This document shows, in pieces, positions 1,125 through 38,813 of a stretch of 64,000 bases of DNA. Both the position numbers and the translations under genes were made by a program. The notes below the pieces were generated by a model. That model searched no databases and had not been told where the DNA came from. It worked only from the letters and a program-made list of their open reading frames with translations. The stretch lies in assembly GCF_000007005.1 (NCBI RefSeq), contig NC_002754.1. The stretch is one strand, 5' to 3'. Every line of letters starts with the position of its first letter. Position 1 is the stretch's first letter. This DNA is from Saccharolobus solfataricus P2 (GTDB taxonomy: Archaea > Thermoproteota > Thermoprotei_A > Sulfolobales > Sulfolobaceae).

Positions 1125-1973
1125 TTGAAGATAGCCTTAGTAGTAGATATAATTAGACAAGAGGAGAAGTTAATAATAAAGGCATTAAATGAAAGACAAA
1201 TAGACTATGACGTAATTAACGTAGGCCAAGAACCTATCCCATTCAATAAAGCACTAAGCAAGTACGATGTTGGTATAATCAGACCAGTAAGTATGTATAG
1301 GGCTCTTTACTCATCTGCGATACTAGAGGCCGCCGGTGTACATACGATAAATTCAACAGACGCTATTGGCACTTGCGGAGATAAGATACTTACATATTCT
1401 AAACTATTTAAACATGGAATTCCAATACCGGACTCAATAATAGCAGCATCTCCAGATGCAGCTATGAAAGCATATGAGCAAATGGGATTCCCACTGATAG
1501 ATAAACCGCCTATCGGAAGTTGGGGAAGGATGGTATCTTTGATAAGAGATGTATATGAGGGAAAGACAATTATAGAGCATAGAGAAATGCTTAATAATTC
1601 AGCGCTAAAAGTACATATTATTCAAGAATATATCAAATACAAAGAAAGAGATATAAGATGTATAGTAATAGGTGATGAGCTATTGGGATGCTATGCAAGA
1701 AATATTCCACCTAATGAGTGGAGAGCAAATGTAGCATTGGGAGGAAATCCTACACCTATTCAGTTAGATGATAACATAAGAGAATTAGCTGTAAAGTCTG
1801 TAAAGTTAGTAAAAGGCGAATTCGTATCTATAGACATATTAGAGCACAAATCAAAAGGATATGTTATAAATGAGCTAAATGATGTTCCAGAATTTAAAGG
1901 ATTTATGCTAGCTACTGGTATCAATGTTGCCGAAAAGCTAGTAGATCACATCGTTAAGACCTACCGAGCTTAG
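1125..1973 (+). CDS. argX: glutamate--LysW ligase ArgX (RimK/LysX family ATP-grasp)
   Basis: [19 protein letters not shown] and [12 protein letters not shown] motifs. TTG start abuts the carB stop. Position after carB favours ArgX over LysX (inference from the known Sulfolobus arg cluster). Confidence 0.8.
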
Positions 1974-2547
1974 CCAGAAAAATATCGTGATTAGTCTCCT
2001 CTAATAGTCTTCTTATGGTATCAATCTTTTGTCTTAGTCCAGGGACCAAGGATTTAGGGTACTCGAAACTCCATAGAAGTTCATATAACTCTTCCATTAT
2101 ATTATATGTATTTTCGGCTTCATCTATTTTATTTTTCTTAAGTAACTCCAATACTCTTCTTCTCATCTCACCTATCGCGTCTGCTATTCCACTTATATAG
2201 TATATGTCTGGAATACCGAGTTCCTTAGAGAGCTTTAACTCAACATCAAAGTACAATGAAATCACTATAGAAGCCTCAGCTAGTTCTTGATACGCAGTTC
2301 CTACATCGCCATATAAAAGTTCTGGGAAACTATCTATAATCTTTTGAATTTCAGATACTTTAGAAATTGCAATCTGATACTTTTTTAATGCCTCTTCTTT
2401 TTTACCCTTGTGAGATAATGAAATTGTCTCCCCGCAATATCTTATTAATTCTCTAGCTAGCATCAATACTCTTTCTCTATTCTCAAATCTTTCTTGAAGT
2501 ACACCACTAATTGAATTAAGATAACCTTTAATTTTCTCAACAAGCAT
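1954..2547 (-). CDS. translin/TRAX family protein
   Basis: All-helical protein with YQELAEA and [17 protein letters not shown] motifs typical of archaeal translin/Trax. Confidence 0.8.
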
Positions 2548-2614
2548 AGTAATTCCACTATATCCGCACTTTTAACTCTATCCATTAATAGAAATTTACT
2601 TATACTTCTTAAAC

Positions 2615-3589
2615 ATGTTTATACATATGAAATCAATTAATAAGGTAGCCGTAATAGGAGCCGGGGTAATAGGCGTAGGGTGGACCACTCTTTTACTAGC
2701 GAAAGGTTATAAAGTAAATTTGTATACGGAAAAGAAAGAAACCTTAGAAAAAGCTTTAGCAAAAGTATCAGCTTATTTAGTTAATCTGAAAAATCTTGGA
2801 ATGATAAATGAAGAACCAGAATCCTACATAACAAATCTAACTGGAATCACGAAAATTGATGACGCAATCCATAATGTGGATTTTGTAATAGAAGCTATAA
2901 TTGAGGATTATACTGCTAAGAAGAATTTATTCAAACTACTTGATACTCAATTGCCTCAAGACATAATAATTGCGAGTAGCACTTCTGGTTTATTAATGAC
3001 TGAAATCCAAAAAGCTATGATAAGACATCCAGAAAGAGGAGTAATTGCTCATCCGTGGAATCCCCCACATCTATTGCCTTTAGTTGAAATAGTACCGGGC
3101 GAGAAAACGTCAAAGGAGACAGTAGATTTGACTAGAGAATTTATGGAAAAGTTAGATAGGGTAGTAGTGCTACTGAGGAAGGAAGTCCCCGGGTTTATAG
3201 GAAATAGATTGGCCTTCGCTTTATTTAGAGAAGCGGTGAATTTAGTTGATGAAGGAGTAGCCACAGTTGAAGATATAGATAAAGTAATGACAGCTGCCAT
3301 AGGTCTAAGATGGGCATTTATGGGGCCATTCTTAACTTATCATTTAGGTGGAGGTGAAGGAGGAATCGAATACTTCTTTAGTAAAGGATTCGGATATGGT
3401 GCAAATGAATGGATGCACACTTTGGCAAAGTGGGACAAATTCCCATATACTGCGGTCAAAAAGGTATTGGAGCAAATGAAAGAATACGAATTTATAAAAG
3501 GAAAGAGCTTTCAAGATCTATCTAGATGGAGAGACGAGAAGCTAGTAACAATTTATAAGGCAGTATATAAGGAAAAATGTAATTCATAA
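2615..3589 (+). CDS. 3-hydroxyacyl-CoA dehydrogenase family protein (lambda-crystallin/carnitine dehydrogenase-like)
   Basis: GAGVIG Rossmann motif, [26 protein letters not shown]. Alternative ATG at 2627. Confidence 0.85.
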
Positions 3590-3605
3590 TATTACCAATT
3601 TTAAC

Positions 3606-4142
3606 TTACTCTCTAAATTCTAAGATTCCTAAACTCTCAAGTAAACCAGAATCCGTTACATCAAATAGAATACAATCATCGTCTCCAGTATTTACATGGT
3701 AATGAATTTCATTTGCGGGCACTACGAAAACATCACCTGCCTTCCACTCTATCTTCTCCTTTCCGATAACCGAGTATCCTCGACCCCTAAAAACAAGATA
3801 TATTGACGCCATATTATGAGAATGGGGTTTAGTCGCAATTCCAGGTTTAATTAACTGGAACCCTGCCATCATCGTAGGCGTTAGTCCCCTATTTCTGCAA
3901 GTTGAAGGGGAGAAGAACATTATTTTCGCTACACCATTCTGTATCTTCCCAGACTCTGCAATTCTCTCTAATAGAGGCAACACTTTCTCAAATTTTATTA
4001 ATTTTGGTTTAACCTTCTCAGGGGGATTAGTGTACTCCATAAAAGTTACTACTTTTAGATCATCTTGTTCAATTTGTTTCACTAATTCTTCTACTTCTCC
4101 TTTTAATACATCTTGTTTGTCAACTCTTTTTAAAACTTCCAT
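3606..4142 (-). CDS. cupin domain protein (gentisate 1,2-dioxygenase-like)
   Basis: PHSHN...GRGYS and [16 protein letters not shown] cupin metal motifs. Confidence 0.75.
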
Positions 4143-4243
4143 ATGATGATTATGTTTAAACTGCTTAAAAAGATGACTATTATAAAATAGACATTATAAA
4201 ATAATTATAAGATTTGAATGGAAGCGAGAGATAGAAATGTGTT

Positions 4244-4795
4244 TTATTTTATAACTAGCAGTGTAATTAAAGCAGTAATAATTCCCGCTACTATTAGCTG
4301 AACCATTGTGCTAATCTTAGCTTTAATTCCCTCACCATAAAGCAACCCTAAAACTGCTAAACTTGATATCCCTACACCTAAGGATAGCATAGTACTATGA
4401 GAATATTCATATGCGTAAAGTACTAGCAAGCCTAAGAATGGAGAAATGCCATGGGCAATAGCAGCTAAGGCTGCAGCTATCCTTGCACTATAGTCATATA
4501 TAGTACCTTTTAGACTCTTTAGAACTTGCTTTTCTATTTTCTCTAATTCAGTTTTTTTCTCCCCCAGCTCTACTACTAGCGCATTCCATGTGGATGAAAT
4601 TGCAGTAGCTATTATCCCACTATATATCGATAAGGAAATACTGGTTAGGCCAATATGTGAGATCACGCCTGCCAACAAAATCGATAAGGTCAATAAAATA
4701 CCATCGAATGCACCTAACACTATATAGCGTCTAATCGAAGATTTTAATTCATATTTTACCACGTATTTTAACGCTTCATATAACTTATTTGCCAC
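4244..4795 (-). CDS. VIT1/CCC1-like membrane protein
   Basis: VLGAFDGIL first-helix motif followed by several hydrophobic helices. Confidence 0.65.
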   Translation of the reverse strand: MANKLYEALKYVVKYELKSSIRRYIVLGAFDGILLTLSILLAGVISHIGLTSISLSIYSGIIATAISSTWNALVVELGEKKTELEKIEKQVLKSLKGTIYDYSARIAAALAAIAHGISPFLGLLVLYAYEYSHSTMLSLGVGISSLAVLGLLYGEGIKAKISTMVQLIVAGIITALITLLVIK

Positions 4796-4835
4796 ATTCC
4801 AAATTAGGATTGAACTTTTATATTAGATTAATGCA

Positions 4836-5246
4836 GTGCTTTTGATGAATAGACAGATTCTCTTAGCGTTAGCACTACTAGTAATAGTAGTAATGGCCAT
4901 AGGAGTTTACGAGGGAAATAAATATAGAACAGAAATTAGTACAGTAGCGTTAGGTAGTCAGCAGACAGATGGAATGTATATGTTGAAGGTTAACGTGATA
5001 ATGAATTATGGACCATTTGGTGGAAAGTCTCCTCTATCCAATGCGGTGATTTGGGTCTATAAATATAATGGAACTACATATTCATTCTATACTTATAATT
5101 TCACTAACTCACAAGGGATAGCATCTTTTAATTTACCAGCAGGACAGTATAAGATCTTGGTAACACAGTTACGTTTAACCTATATAGTTAACTTAAATCA
5201 AAACGAAGAAGTTATAATTAACTATGCCTATTTAAACAGTGGATGA
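4836..5246 (+). CDS. membrane-anchored or secreted protein with carboxypeptidase-regulatory-like beta domain
   Basis: N-terminal hydrophobic helix, then TNSQGIASFNLPAGQYKILV beta-sandwich pattern. Confidence 0.6.
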   Translation: MLLMNRQILLALALLVIVVMAIGVYEGNKYRTEISTVALGSQQTDGMYMLKVNVIMNYGPFGGKSPLSNAVIWVYKYNGTTYSFYTYNFTNSQGIASFNLPAGQYKILVTQLRLTYIVNLNQNEEVIINYAYLNSG

Positions 5247-5298
5247 GGATTACGGGAGTACAACTGAGGAGAATGATGTAGTGGTCCTTCACTGATAA
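5236..5298 (+). ncRNA. box C/D guide sRNA with two predicted 16S rRNA guides
   Basis: Variant C box UGGAUGA 5240-5246, D' CUGA 5264-5267, C' AUGAUGU 5273-5279, D CUGA 5292-5295. Guides CGGGAGUAC and GUGGUCCUUC are complementary to recalled Sulfolobales 16S segments GUACUCCCG and GGAGGACCAC. Confidence 0.8.
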
Positions 5299-5329
5299 AA
5301 ATTTATTTTAATTCCCTTCTTTTATATTA

Positions 5330-5821
5330 TTGATGAGCATAAAAATAGATGTTGTAAGAATAGATATACCAGAAGGAACTAATGTAATTATAGGGCAGTC
5401 TCATTTTATTAAGACAGTTGAAGACTTGTATGAGACCTTATCGTCAAGTAGCCCGAATCTAAAGTTCGGCATAGCATTCAACGAAGCTAGCAGTAAAAGA
5501 CTTATAAGGTATGATGGAAACGATCAAGAGCTGATTAAGCTTGCAATTGAGAACGCAAAGAAAATAGGCGCAGGCCACGTTTTTGTGATCTACCTAAAGA
5601 ACGGTTATCCAATTAATGTCTTGAATAGAATAAAAAACGTAGAGGAAGTTGTTAGAATATTCGTAGCTACAGCTAACCCATTACAAGTTATAGTAGCTGA
5701 AACAGATCAAGGAAGAGGTGTAATTGGTGTAGTAGATGGGTACGCCCCATTAGGTGTTGAGTCCGAGGCTGATATACAAGAGAGGAAGGAGTTCTTGAGG
5801 AAGATCGGATATAAGAGATAA
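5330..5821 (+). CDS. adenosine-specific kinase family protein (DUF355)
   Basis: [22 protein letters not shown] and [25 protein letters not shown] motifs. Confidence 0.85.
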
Positions 5822-6202
5822 GGCTTTTTCCATCAACATATCAGAAACCTCAATTTCCCCTTTTAGATACTTAATTAAAGAGGCACAGAGCAAAATTATT
5901 GCTTGCAAAAATTTTTTGTCGTCCTTATTTTTTACCTCTCTCCATTTTTCCTCTATAATCTCATGACATTCCCAAAATCTCATTTCATAAAATAACGGTT
6001 TAAATGTACCACTGATCTCGGTAACCATAAATAATGGTTCGCCAATTAAGGATATAACCTTTCTAGGATCGTCCATTATATCTACTTCAACATATTTCCC
6101 TATCCTAACGTCTATTACATTGATGTTTTTACTCCTTAGAAATTTCTTTAGATCATCGTTAAATATTCCCTTCTTATAGAATAATAAAACCCTACCCAAC
6201 AT
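5750..6202 (-). CDS. DUF309 family protein
   Basis: [12 protein letters not shown] and [14 protein letters not shown] pattern. Overlaps the convergent gene by 72 nt. Confidence 0.7.
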
Positions 6203-6263
6203 TTACATTACACTCTATCTAATACAAAATATTTTTTACCCTTTAAGAGAAATAGCATAACAT

Positions 6264-7319
6264 ATGACTAAAGAAGCAGTACTGTATAAAAAAGAGGATG
6301 GTAGAATTCGTTGTTTGGCTTGTGCTAGAAAATGTCTAATAGGAGAGGGACAAGTAGGGTTTTGTGGTGTGAGATCAGTTAGAAATGGAAAACTATACCT
6401 TGATGTTTATGGGAAAATAGCAGCTGCTCATATAGACCCTATTGAGAAGAAACCTCTAGTACACTTTAACCCAGGTTCAAAGGTTTTCTCATTTTCAACA
6501 TATGGATGTAATTGGATGTGTATGTATTGTCAAAATTATGATATAAGCCAAAGGCGTAAAGCTGAGGGAGTAGAACTATCACCAGAAGAGATTGTTGAAC
6601 TGGCAATGGGGTACGATGTGGATGGAATGACATATACTTATAATGAACCGGCAATATTCTCTGAATTTGCACATGACGTTGGTATTGTAGCAAAAAGGTA
6701 TGGCCTATTTAATACTATGGTATCAAATGGGTATTGGACGCCAAATCTCGTGGACTATGTAAAGGACTTTCTGGATGCTGTTACAATAGACTTTAAGGGA
6801 AATGGGGAACAGAAGTTTTTAAGAAGATATACTGGCGCTACATCTGCGGAGCCCATTATCGAGACTGCGAGTGAGTTATCGAAAAAAGGGATTCATGTGG
6901 AAATTACAGACTTAATAATACCGCAAATAGGCGATGATCTACAAGCAGCAAAACAACTTTTAACTAAACTGTACGATCAACTAGGCGCAGATATACCGAT
7001 TCATTTCTTAAGATTTCACCCTGATTATAAATTAAATTATATACCGTGGACTCCAGTTGAGACACTGGAGAGGCATTATAAATTAGCAAAGGAACTAGGT
7101 TTCAAATTTGTTTATGTAGGAAATGTCCCTGGACATCCTTATGAGAATACATATTGCCCAAACTGCGGTAATTTAGTAATAAGAAGATATAGCTTCGATA
7201 TTTTGGAATGGCACCTCACTGAGGATATGAGGTGTAAGTTCTGTGGATATAAGTTACCTATAAGAGGAAAGTTATCTAGACACGCATTCAAGGAAAGATT
7301 CGAGCCAGTATTTATTTAG
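6264..7319 (+). CDS. AmmeMemoRadiSam system radical SAM enzyme (PFL-activase-like)
   Basis: N-terminal CLACARKC...[25 protein letters not shown] (CxxxCxxC), C-terminal CPNCG...CKFCG. Confidence 0.85.
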
Positions 7320-8070
7320 ACCTCCTTGAAAGGAACTCATTAACTCTTTTCTTCTCTTCCTCCGTTGCAAATGCGATACCCCATCCTAAACTTTCTAACG
7401 TTAAACCACTCAGTATTGGAGCGTCGTTACCATAATTTACTACAGTCTTTATTAATCTTATAGCTATTTGTGGCTTTTCGGCAAGTTTCAAAGCCAATTC
7501 CCTTACCTCTTTTTCAAGAGATGAAGGTTCTACAACTCTATTTACAAGGCCTATTCTCTCCGCATAATCGGCTTTTATTATATCACCTAACATGATAATT
7601 TCCATCGCTCTCCCTTTTCCAATTAGCCTAACCAATCTCTGAGTACCGCCGAATCCGGGATAAATTCCCAAATTAATTTCTGGTAATCCTAGTTCTGCAA
7701 TTTGGGAAGCAATTCTAAGGTCACAACTCAATGCTAGCTCTAAACCTCCACCTAGCGCATATCCATTTATCATGGCTATGGTAGGCTTAGGATACCTTTC
7801 AATATAATCCATTAGTTCTCTTCCCTTTATAGCAAATTCCCAAGCTTTAACTGGGTCTAAATCTTTAAACTGAGAAATATCAGCTCCAGCTGAAAAGGCC
7901 TTTCCAGAACCCGTAAATATAACAACCTTAATTTTATCATTGTCTACAATTTGCCTTAAAATATCTCCAATTTCCCTTATCATAATCGAGTTAATTGAAT
8001 TTAATTTGTCTGGTCTATTTAATACTATCCATTCTATTGGGGGTTCTTCTTTTGTAACTATTGTCTCCAT
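7312..8070 (-). CDS. enoyl-CoA hydratase, probably 3-hydroxypropionyl-CoA dehydratase (3HP/4HB cycle)
   Basis: Crotonase motifs [18 protein letters not shown] and [17 protein letters not shown]. Resembles the characterised Sulfolobales 3-HP-CoA dehydratase as I recall it. Confidence 0.75.
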
Positions 8071-8142
8071 TGATAGAAACCCTCAAAGAATATGATGCAC
8101 CGCAATATTTATCTTTTTAAGCTTTAAGTAGTAATAGTACAT

Positions 8143-8694
8143 GTGACTAGGAGAGATATAATAATATCAATAATATCAGCACTGCCACCGATAATAGGAA
8201 CTACTATTACATCGTTTATTATGAGTAGAAGATATGGAGATCTAAAAGAAGTAATTAAGTATGTAATAATAGGCTTACCAGTTACCTTAGCTATTACCTA
8301 TTACTTGATTCTAAACATATTTCCAAAATACGTAGATTACTTAATAGCAATTCCCGCGCTTTTACCATTACCAATCTCATTTCTCTTAACTAGAAATAAC
8401 ATTTCAATCAACTATAGTGAAGACTATATTGAGATAAAGTTTAAAATACCAATTAATATGACCTCCCATGATCCACATGAATTGTTTAATTATGTATTTA
8501 ATAAGGCATTAGGTAAAATTAGAAACCCTTATTACCATTATAAATTGTCTGCAGCTGCAAACTGCTCTGGACTAAAGGTATCTTATCAAAATGAGGATAA
8601 GTTAGTAATAAGAAGAAAATGCGGAGATATAGATATTAGAATTATAATCTCCTCTAAGAAAATAGCTGATATGGTAATAGATATCTCATATTAA
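8143..8694 (+). CDS. hypothetical membrane protein
   Basis: Three N-terminal hydrophobic segments then a soluble domain. GTG start. Confidence 0.55.
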
Positions 8695-14200: not shown

Positions 14201-15953
<1,753 letters not shown>

Positions 15954-15971
15954 TTAACAAGAAAATATACT

Positions 15972-16027
15972 TGTCGATGATGAGTCAAGAAAAATGATTT
16001 GATGATTTTTGAGGTGATCTCTGAATA
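15972..16027 (+). ncRNA. box C/D sRNA whose D guide is complementary to the 16S rRNA 3' end
   Basis: C AUGAUGA 15977-15983, D' AUGA 15994-15997, C' UUGAUGA 15999-16005, D CUGA 16021-16024, with canonical spacing, in an intergenic gap. Confidence 0.8.
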
Positions 16028-16063
16028 AAGTTATTTAAAGGAGTAGGAAAAGAGTGTATAGGA

Positions 16064-16576
16064 ATGACAGAACAGACTATTTTAATGGGTAATTTAAATG
16101 AAGTAGCTAAAAAGGCGGCTCAATGGCTAATTAATAGGAAACCCATCAAATCGATAATTGATTGGGGAATTTCATTTTCTTTATGGCCACCTCACTTTAC
16201 TACATCTTGTTGTGGTACGGAATTTGGAGCTTTCGCAGCTGCAAGATTTGATGCAGAGAGATATGGGATGTTGCCATTCTCCTCTGCTAGACAATCAAAT
16301 ATACTTATACTGGAAGGTACGCTAAGTAGAAAAATGGGTAGAGCAGCGAGAATTGTTTATGACCAGATGCCAGAACCAAAATACGTTATCGCCCTTGGAG
16401 CGTGTATACTCGAAGGAGGAATCTTTTGGAATTCTTATAATACCGTGCTTCCCTCAGATATTGGAATACCAGTTGATTTATACGTTCCGGGATGCCCAAT
16501 AAGGCCAGAGGCTGTAGCTAGAGCAGTATTAATGTTACAGAAGAAGATAAGAACTCAAGGAGCCCTTAAGACATAA
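16064..16576 (+). CDS. nuoB: NADH-quinone oxidoreductase subunit B (NuoB-like)
   Basis: TTSCCGTE, SARQS, EPKYVIALGAC, VDLYVPGCPIRPE. Confidence 0.9.
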   Translation: MTEQTILMGNLNEVAKKAAQWLINRKPIKSIIDWGISFSLWPPHFTTSCCGTEFGAFAAARFDAERYGMLPFSSARQSNILILEGTLSRKMGRAARIVYDQMPEPKYVIALGACILEGGIFWNSYNTVLPSDIGIPVDLYVPGCPIRPEAVARAVLMLQKKIRTQGALKT

Positions 16577-23537: not shown

Positions 23538-23790
23538 GTGAAAATACATTCTTGATATAGAGACCAAGGTTTTACAATAAAAAGTTCATTAGCAAAACAT
23601 ATTCTCTTTTTAAAGAAGAATAAAAAATTTCTAAAGTAATACGGTAATATATTTAAAGATTTATGGTACTATACTTTGCCATAATGAATTAAGATCATGA
23701 TTGGCGTAACTTTTTTTCGATAATATTCTACTAAGATTTCATAAGGAATGCTTATTAGGTATTTCATTGTGAATTTCTATCAGATACAAA

Positions 23791-23859
23791 ATGGCCAAGA
23801 AGAAGAAGGAGCAAGGTGGGCAACAACAACAGAGTGGCGGAGAGCAGAAAAAGAAATAA
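23791..23859 (+). CDS. candidate 22-aa Lys/Gln-rich micro-protein MAKKKKEQGGQQQQSGGEQKKK
   Basis: ATG 23791 to TAA 23859, translated by hand. A purine- and GC-richer island within an AT-rich gap. Confidence 0.4.
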   Translation: MAKKKKEQGGQQQQSGGEQKKK

Positions 23860-23924
23860 CGGGCATCAAACCTATATTATAGTAAAGTATTAAAGTTAAT
23901 CCCTTTTTTACCTCCTTATATCCT

Positions 23925-32211: not shown

Positions 32212-32292
<81 letters not shown>

Positions 32293-32337: not shown

Positions 32338-32395
32338 ATTATCAGCTTTTCCAGCGATAATCATCAAATCATTGGACCCTCTCATCATCATAATC
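32338..32395 (-). ncRNA. box C/D sRNA directly upstream of tRNA-Gly
   Basis: On the minus strand: C AUGAUGA 32391-32385, D' AUGA 32372-32369, C' UUGAUGA 32367-32361, D CUGA 32345-32342. TATA-like TTTTTAAA at 32418-32411. Confidence 0.8.
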
Positions 32396-37384: not shown

Positions 37385-37458
37385 TGCCGCCGCGGGGACT
37401 TGAACCCCGGACAACCCGGTCTTCAGCCGGGCGCTCTCCCGGGCTGAGCTACGGCGGC
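37385..37458 (-). tRNA. tRNA-Phe (GAA), no intron, CCA not encoded
   Basis: GCCGCCG/CGGCGGC acceptor stem, CCCGG-CTGAAGA-CCGGG anticodon arm, GGTTCAAGTCC T loop, upstream AAAAGTTAAAAAG promoter. Confidence 0.97.
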
Positions 37459-37510: not shown

Positions 37511-37589
37511 GGGGATCTGGCGACACCCTTGGAGAACCCTAAATATTTAGGGATTCGATGAATTAGGGTCTCCAGAGATCCCCACAGTA
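37511..37589 (+). ncRNA. candidate structured RNA (long hairpin followed by ACA; H/ACA-like or 5' leader)
   Basis: GGGGATCT 37511-18 pairs with AGATCCCC 37576-83, then ACA 37584-86. Inner stems TGGAGA/TCTCCA and ACCCTAA/TTAGGGT. Confidence 0.5.
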
Positions 37590-38539: not shown

Positions 38540-38587
38540 ATAACTTTATAACATTTCTTCGCATTAATAGTTATTTGATGATATAAC

Positions 38588-38683
38588 ATGGGAGGAAGAC
38601 AAAAGACAACATTATTTATGACAAAAGAAGTTAGAAAAGAAAAGAAGACTAGTCAAACTAGTCCTCAACCCTCTTCAAAATAA
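38588..38683 (+). CDS. candidate 31-aa basic micro-protein MGGRQKTTLFMTKEVRKEKKTSQTSPQPSSK
   Basis: ATG 38588 to TAA 38683, translated by hand. Fills the gap between archease and cedA2. Confidence 0.3.
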   Translation: MGGRQKTTLFMTKEVRKEKKTSQTSPQPSSK

Positions 38684-38813
38684 ATTTGCTTATTACTAGC
38701 AGAACTAAAACGAGCAGAGTGGTGTAAATAATAACGTAATTGTTTTTTGAATACACAAAGGCTAGGATACTATCTATTATTATAAGTATTATCATTAGAT
38801 TACTGCTTTTCAC
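38658..38813 (-). CDS. cedA2: CedA2 small membrane protein of the Ced DNA-import system (not in ORF track)
   Basis: GTG 38813 with AGGTGA SD. 51 aa MKSSNLMIILIIIDSILAFVYSKNNYVIIYTTLLVLVLLVISKFILKRVED, two hydrophobic helices, directly after cedA. Confidence 0.75.
   Translation of the reverse strand: MKSSNLMIILIIIDSILAFVYSKNNYVIIYTTLLVLVLLVISKFILKRVED

Follow-up and report, generated by a model that had tools for sequence, protein, structure and literature searches.

A box C/D sRNA of Saccharolobus solfataricus with a conserved guide complementary to the 3' end of 16S rRNA

The gap between the Sua5/TsaC gene and a nuoB-like gene of Saccharolobus solfataricus P2 contains the motif GAGGTGA, enclosed by sequences that resemble the boxes of archaeal C/D sRNAs. 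This raises the question of whether the motif serves the nuoB-like gene or belongs to a separate small RNA, and what such an RNA might do at the 3' end of 16S rRNA, to which the motif is complementary. The window, which is the whole stretch of 64,000 nucleotides analysed here, corresponds to positions 558,001-622,000 of the + strand of NC_002754. The coordinates are based on tRNA genes, since the window tRNAs at 32217-32292 (-) and 37385-37458 (-) are SSOt28 and SSOt29, giving an offset of exactly 558,000. The gap of 128 nt between Sua5 and nuoB reads ...cuugucG AUGAUGA GUCAAGAAAA AUGA UUUG AUGAUUU UUGAGGUGAUCU CUGA auaaag..., and the following features were assigned in and around it.

14859-15935, - strand: Sua5/TsaC gene, the divergent upstream neighbour and synteny anchor
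15946-15951, + strand: TATA box TTTAAA of the sRNA gene, a predicted promoter element 30 nt 5' of the transcript start at 15976
15976-16026, + strand: box C/D sRNA of about 50 nt with four boxes, the 3' end being approximate
15977-15983, + strand: C box AUGAUGA, an exact match to the RUGAUGA consensus, invariant in five Saccharolobus species
15984-15993, + strand: D' guide GUCAAGAAAA, 10 nt, an orphan guide varying among Saccharolobus species
15994-15997, + strand: D' box AUGA, a degenerate CUGA, with GA retained in all Saccharolobus orthologues (AUGA, UUGA, UCGA)
16002-16008, + strand: C' box AUGAUUU, an RTGAKWD box located exactly 12 nt before CUGA in nine species
16009-16020, + strand: D guide UUGAGGUGAUCU, 12 nt, whose core at 16010-16019 pairs with nt 1487-1496 of 16S rRNA
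16021-16024, + strand: D box CUGA, an exact consensus match, invariant in nine species
16034-16039, + strand: TATA box TTTAAA of the nuoB-like gene, conserved and located 30 nt 5' of the ATG at 16064
16064-16576, + strand: solitary nuoB-like gene (PF01058), the downstream neighbour, outside the sRNA

The spacing from TATA box to start is 30 nt for both genes, counted to the transcript start for the sRNA and to the ATG for nuoB. Because its ATG stands at this distance from the TATA box, the nuoB mRNA appears to be leaderless. The TATA box of the sRNA gene is kept in the Saccharolobus orthologues, and a T-rich TTATTT around the nuoB TATA box may act as the terminator of the sRNA. The nuoB-like gene has Sua5 on one side and, on the other, a convergent MOFRL/glycerate-kinase-like gene, which overlaps its 3' end. 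Since it is solitary between these two genes, it is not located in a nuo operon, and this solitary, apparently leaderless arrangement is kept across the Sulfolobaceae.

The motif, which precedes nuoB, is identical to the Sulfolobus Shine-Dalgarno (SD) consensus, so that it could be read as a cis element of this gene, serving as SD sequence, leader or promoter, with the boxes being coincidental. However, it is located 47 nt before the ATG of what appears to be a leaderless mRNA, and the TATA box of nuoB intervenes. Across genera, between 38 and 149 nt separate the guide from nuoB, whereas CUGA and the box 12 nt upstream keep a constant spacing to it. For these reasons, a role of GAGGUGA as SD or leader element was rejected, and the explanation by a cis element as a whole is hardly credible. 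The earlier note had already considered that the motif might be merely an SD or leader sequence of nuoB, not conserved together with the boxes. In the orthologous loci, motif and boxes are co-conserved.

A discrete transcript from this site is on record. The published ncRNA 21, at P2 positions 573976-574016 (+), which are window positions 15976-16016, was reported with neither a class nor a named homologue, and was found with an FPKM of ~140 in both SmAP1/2 co-purifications (supplementary table). The same table labels ncRNA 24, the sR20 homologue, as C/D box. ncRNA 21 belongs to the trans-encoded ncRNA set of Wurtzel 2010. The published end at 16016 is short of the D box. That the RNA might already be contained in a published Sulfolobus set, as had been raised in the earlier note, thus proved right, since ncRNA 21 coincides with the sRNA. 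The homologous unit is missing from the set of 61 RNA-seq sRNAs of S. acidocaldarius, though its DNA is present, and the sRNA sequence is not contained in the Xu 2012 supplements. Given the tRNA-based offset of 558,000, other published ncRNAs also fall within the window, namely ncRNA 22/23 (~23770-23907, both strands), ncRNA 25 (37546-37581, +), which is labelled H/ACA, and ncRNA 26 (38577-38744, +). None of these had an Rfam match at gathering thresholds.

The RNA encoded between Sua5 and nuoB is a four-box archaeal C/D sRNA, otherwise ordinary, which was previously unclassified, is new among the C/D sRNAs and is absent from Rfam. Only two sites in the 64-kb window show the four boxes at archaeal spacing, namely this sRNA and the Rfam-validated sR20 at 32342 (-), and the pattern was obtained in 0 of 100 first-order Markov simulations. 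The earlier note had placed a box C/D sRNA with four boxes at this site, which is borne out, and its C, D' and D boxes are retained. Its C' box, taken as UUGAUGA at 15999-16005 (UGAUGA at 16000-16005), was replaced by AUGAUUU. The latter register is preferred because it gives a D guide of the canonical 12 nt, compared to a spacer of 15 nt in the UGAUGA register, because it forms the same module as in sR20, and because it is in register in nine species. The D' spacer is 10-11 nt long and, at 10 nt, falls below the canonical 12. The module of D' box, loop and C' box (AUGA, UUUG, AUGAUUU) shows the box pattern of a K-loop, in which the GA dinucleotides are kept and the boxes are degenerate. Degenerate D' and C' boxes are common in archaeal C/D sRNAs.

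Rfam contains no family that reaches the gathering threshold for the sRNA, the best score being 19.9 bits compared to a threshold of 44 for sR20. With relaxed thresholds, weak matches to several archaeal sR families were obtained at 15973-16026, which involve the boxes only. A terminal stem was not found beside the C and D boxes, and the fold is not better than that of shuffled sequences (z = 0.66). The lack of a stable fold or terminal stem is usual for Sulfolobus sRNAs. The sR20 gene (RF01140; window 32340-32394, -) has the same architecture, with a near-identical AUGA-UUUG-AUGAUUA module followed by a 12-nt D guide, while its guides are unrelated to those of the sRNA. This sR20-family sRNA (50 bits) is located 47 nt from the tRNA gene at 32217-32292 on the same strand, and both may form one dicistronic unit.

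Orthologous Sua5-nuoB spacers were compared from S. islandicus, Sulfolobus sp. E5-1-F, an S. caldissimus-like strain, Sulfolobus sp. A20, S. acidocaldarius SUSAZ, a Metallosphaera, an Acidianus-like contig and the Sulfolobaceae RB850M. At the syntenic site, all nine species (9/9) contain, in register, RTGAKWD, N-TGAGGTGATC-K and CTGA. Guide positions 2-11 together with CUGA, which are 14 contiguous nucleotides, are invariant in the nine species from at least four genera, and the lineages keeping N-UGAGGUGAUC-K-CUGA are Saccharolobus, Sulfolobus, Metallosphaera, the Acidianus-like contig and the unclassified RB850M. The parts that vary are guide position 1 (U/G), position 12 (U/G/A), the D' guide and the flanks. 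Also the U-run, comprising the four bases 5' of the guide core, occurs as UUUU, UUUG, UUUA, UAUU or GAUA. In Sulfodiicoccus, the synteny of Sua5 and nuoB is lost, and no element was found within the locus.

For the target, the rRNA operons of S. solfataricus (L126, L130; LT549890) and S. islandicus (L125, L127, L129, L132) were read. In all of them, the 3' end of 16S rRNA is ...GCGGCUGGAUCACCUCA, followed by the spacer UAGUUACAAACUCCCC, which starts with UAGUUAC. The length of the S. solfataricus 16S rRNA of 1496 nt agrees with SSOr03. Guide positions 2-11 (UGAGGUGAUC) form 10 contiguous Watson-Crick pairs with the terminal GAUCACCUCA-3' of the 16S rRNA, and guide position 1 (U) faces a G, which is the one U-G pair. 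The last 10 nt of the 16S rRNA, GAUCACCUCA, are unique in the 7-kb operon, where GATCACCTCA also occurs once. Guide position 5 is G16016, and the N+5 rule selects C1490, the C of GGAUC, which is the seventh nucleotide from the 3' end of the 1496 nt, lies inside the anti-SD sequence and is equivalent to C1533 of E. coli. Guide position 11 is a U in the Sulfolobaceae, whose 16S rRNA ends with CUCA (S. acidocaldarius, Saccharolobus), and the 16S rRNA ends with CUCC in all six non-Sulfolobus archaea of a published alignment.

A contiguous match of 10 nt is reached by about 2% of random 12-mers anywhere in the 7 kb, and by a mismatch-tolerant score the D guide was not distinguishable from shuffled guides (103/1000). 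The contiguous match is the informative measure, and the case is carried by the position at the terminus and by the conservation. For the D' guide, the complement in the whole pre-rRNA operon never exceeds 7 nt, so that a target in the pre-rRNA was rejected, the best matches being at chance level.

Three proposals of the earlier note, namely that the D guide pairs with the anti-SD end with one U-G pair, that the +5 rule selects the C of GGAUC and that the D' guide lacks an rRNA match, are in agreement with these results on the 16S rRNA of the species itself. A fourth, that the U-run could pair with precursor sequence beyond the mature end, was rejected. S. solfataricus and S. islandicus share the spacer UAGUUAC but not guide positions 12-15, the U-run varies, and the first spacer position would give a U-U mismatch. 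Different guide positions over an identical spacer imply that pairing past the mature 16S end is not under selection.

The locus is probably best understood as an independently transcribed C/D sRNA of ~50 nt with one working guide, which directs 2'-O-methylation of C1490. This explanation builds on demonstrated boxes and spacing, promoter geometry, a transcript, exact complementarity to the 16S end and invariance of the pairing nucleotides across genera. The most likely role of the conserved guide, which is complementary to the final ten bases of 16S rRNA, is to direct a single ribose methylation at this tail. By analogy to its family, the sRNA would assemble with L7Ae, Nop5 and fibrillarin, with the terminal C and D boxes forming a K-turn and the internal AUGA/AUGAUUU pair forming a K-loop. 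The D guide alone would then be at work. A helix of 10 bp between its positions 2-11 and the ten terminal nucleotides of 16S rRNA would bring C1490 in the anti-SD to the fibrillarin site, where it would be 2'-O-methylated. The D' guide, short and rich in A/U, would be a drifting spacer whose role is purely structural.

For S. solfataricus C/D RNPs, it was shown that substrates of at most 10 nt are recognised, that position 1 stays unpaired and that the spacers are 12 nt long (PMC7229835). The footprint of conserved positions 2-11 agrees with this substrate limit, and a 12-nt spacer with invariance of exactly these positions is what characterises an ordinary methylation guide. A single functional guide located upstream of box D has been described in the same work for S. 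solfataricus sR1, which has a different target from the sRNA. A literature search found no modification map that covers the final 7 nt of Sulfolobus 16S rRNA.

The origin of the gene is illuminated by sR15 (Rfam RF01146; Sac-sR15), which shares the intergenic position between Sua5 and nuoB with the sRNA. In comparison, the sRNA has no match to RF01146 and lacks the 5' half of sR15 (GUGAUGA-GGAACC...). Outside Saccharolobus, the guide unit is located 11-12 nt 3' of sR15, as found for S. acidocaldarius, Metallosphaera, RB850M and the Acidianus-like contig, and a match to RF01146 confirms sR15 in locus L089. The composite arrays (L089 3833-3925; L090 3770-3860; L001 3845-3935; L092 3830-3925) consist of sR15, a halfmer-like unit comprising a C-like box, the 12-nt 16S-tail guide and CUGA, then 3-4 nt and a further C-like box. 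This last box is AUGAUGA, UUGAUGA or GUGAUGA, and a weaker GUGAGGA in the Acidianus-like contig; in the four loci, no D box was found 12 nt 3' of it. The published Sac-sR15 RNA stops before the halfmer unit, and neither of its guides has a predicted target (NP/NP).

In Saccharolobus, the gene resembles a fusion of the sR15 3' half with the 16S-tail guide unit, as judged from the sequences. The ancestral sR15 D guide (CAUAGGCGCU) appears to have decayed into the present D' guide, for which S. islandicus contains the form GAUAGGGAAAAU. The 16S-tail guide alone stayed intact, which marks where selection acts.

The 16S processing stem, formed by the 5' leader GGGAACCAAGGG and the spacer CCCUUGGUUCCC, is visible in L126 (reverse strand of 1401-8400), and in other genera the sR15 D' guide opens with GGAACC, which is the leader-strand sense of this stem. 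A pairing of the sR15 guides with rRNA spacers was rejected. In the operons tested, extended species-matched complements were not found, only short or G-U-rich matches, and the core of the sR15 D guide, CAUAGGCGC, is complementary to Saccharolobus 23S rRNA over 9 nt.

A history of this kind would also be compatible with a relic of the sR15 cluster that is in decay, still transcribed and no longer functional. The resemblance of the Saccharolobus RNA to the sR15 3' half with the downstream unit fits this explanation, as do the degenerate D' guide and D'/C' boxes and the likeness of the S. islandicus D' guide GAUAGGG... to the sR15 D guide CAUAGGC... of RB850M. However, the invariance of 14 contiguous nucleotides in nine species from at least four genera, amid a fast-evolving intergenic region, is difficult to reconcile with decay. 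Conservation extends to the C box and the promoter, and the RNA is expressed. A non-functional remnant is thus very unlikely.

For a methylation guide of this sequence, a precedent is provided by sR26 of Pyrococcus furiosus, the model sRNA of the Carlomagno laboratory. Its D guide is CGGAGGUGAUCU-CUGA, so that GAGGUGAUCU-CUGA is common to both RNAs. From this likeness, sR26 is predicted to have the same 10-bp footprint on GAUCACCUC(C/A) and to select the same N+5 cytidine. Both RNAs differ at guide position 11, which is a G in sR26, suiting a 16S end of CUCC, and a U in the sRNA, suiting CUCA, in a comparison that did not include the Pyrococcus 16S rRNA itself. Further, the D' guide is functional in sR26 (GUGAUGGGCGAA), whereas it is an orphan in the sRNA, and Rfam revealed no overall sequence homology between the two. 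A natural target of sR26 was not found to be named in the sR26 literature. A full-text search with the guide sequence returned the sR26 paper only, and a search with the 16S-tail sequence returned nothing relevant. The sR26 RNP was shown to methylate the matching substrate in vitro, with poor turnover of substrate D, whose slow release depends on substrate D' (PMC4836650). Guides with this sequence may therefore linger on their target.

The question arises whether the RNP acts on the tail other than by methylation, and the earlier note had suggested that it masks the anti-SD or chaperones 3' processing rather than acting as an ordinary guide. In such a non-catalytic or dual role, the sRNP would hold the 16S 3' tail in late 30S assembly, either by masking the anti-SD or by timing the 3'-end cleavage beside the CUCA/UAGU junction, with methylation being secondary or absent. 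The helix indeed stops exactly at the mature 3' terminus, beside the 3' processing site, and the behaviour of sR26, which has the same guide and frees substrate D slowly and only with D' occupied, would suit a holding role. In addition, the second guide of the sRNA is an orphan, and in four lineages (three genera and RB850M) the unit is located directly 3' of the orphan sR15 (NP/NP). However, the sR15 guides lack extended complements to the rRNA spacers, pairing beyond the mature end is not selected, and conservation is limited to positions 2-11, which is the footprint of the catalytic mode. A literature search returned no paper that ties C/D RNPs to the anti-SD.

Eukaryotic snoRNAs of the U3/U14 type are C/D RNPs which chaperone processing by pairing with pre-rRNA. 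Their pairings are extended, are located outside the box-adjacent spacer and involve precursor or distant sequences. For the sRNA, no extended pairing of the U3/U14 type was found in the pre-rRNA operon, and no conserved pairing with precursor or spacer sequence of the U3 kind was found when S. solfataricus was compared to S. islandicus. The masking or chaperone idea is without positive support in this analysis, and a holding role is considered rather unlikely. The 12-nt spacer, the invariance of positions 2-11 and the in vitro methylation by sR26 instead speak for an ordinary guide.

Beyond the Sulfolobaceae, guides to the 16S tail also seem to be present in other archaea, as far as complementarity can tell. 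In Nanoarchaeum equitans, the D guide of sR13, GAGGAGGUGAUA, and the D' guide of sR20, AGGUGAUCCAGC, are both complementary to their own 16S end, GCUGGAUCACCUCCU; the sR20 D' guide was set against its own 16S sequence GCUGGAUCACCU (PMC4644070, Additional file 1). These two RNAs would select neighbouring nucleotides, not the equivalent of C1490, and both are listed as NP, for no predicted target, in the target table (PMC4644070). Ignicoccus hospitalis sR305 also has a guide complementary to its own 16S 3' end and is listed as NP (PMC4644070). 16S-tail guides may be systematically under-called. The candidates recognised are those of the Sulfolobaceae, Pyrococcus sR26 and Nanoarchaeum sR13 and sR20. 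A more far-reaching proposal holds that such guides are overlooked and widespread in thermophilic archaea, and that the sRNP dwells on the anti-SD of the nascent 30S subunit, where it would couple methylation to 3' maturation and keep immature subunits off SD-led mRNAs. This proposal is speculative and, as a whole, is regarded as improbable.

For S. solfataricus, the favoured explanation, a guide for methylation of C1490, provides a predicted function for the unlabelled transcript ncRNA 21. It further predicts a specific ribose methylation inside the anti-SD, where mapping based on reverse transcription cannot reach. A possible benefit of the modification would be a steadier exposed 3' tail or a steadier SD:anti-SD helix at 80 °C. 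With one small gene and one conserved guide, the locus offers a clean genetic handle on the role of the methyl group in SD-dependent initiation, tail stability and 30S maturation. The significance of the finding is moderate and rests on the predicted methylation site and on the wide recurrence of the guide logic. Since the same logic is encountered in three distant lineages, and was left without a target in a large survey, modification of the anti-SD tail may be a general and under-recorded trait of the ribosomes of hyperthermophiles.
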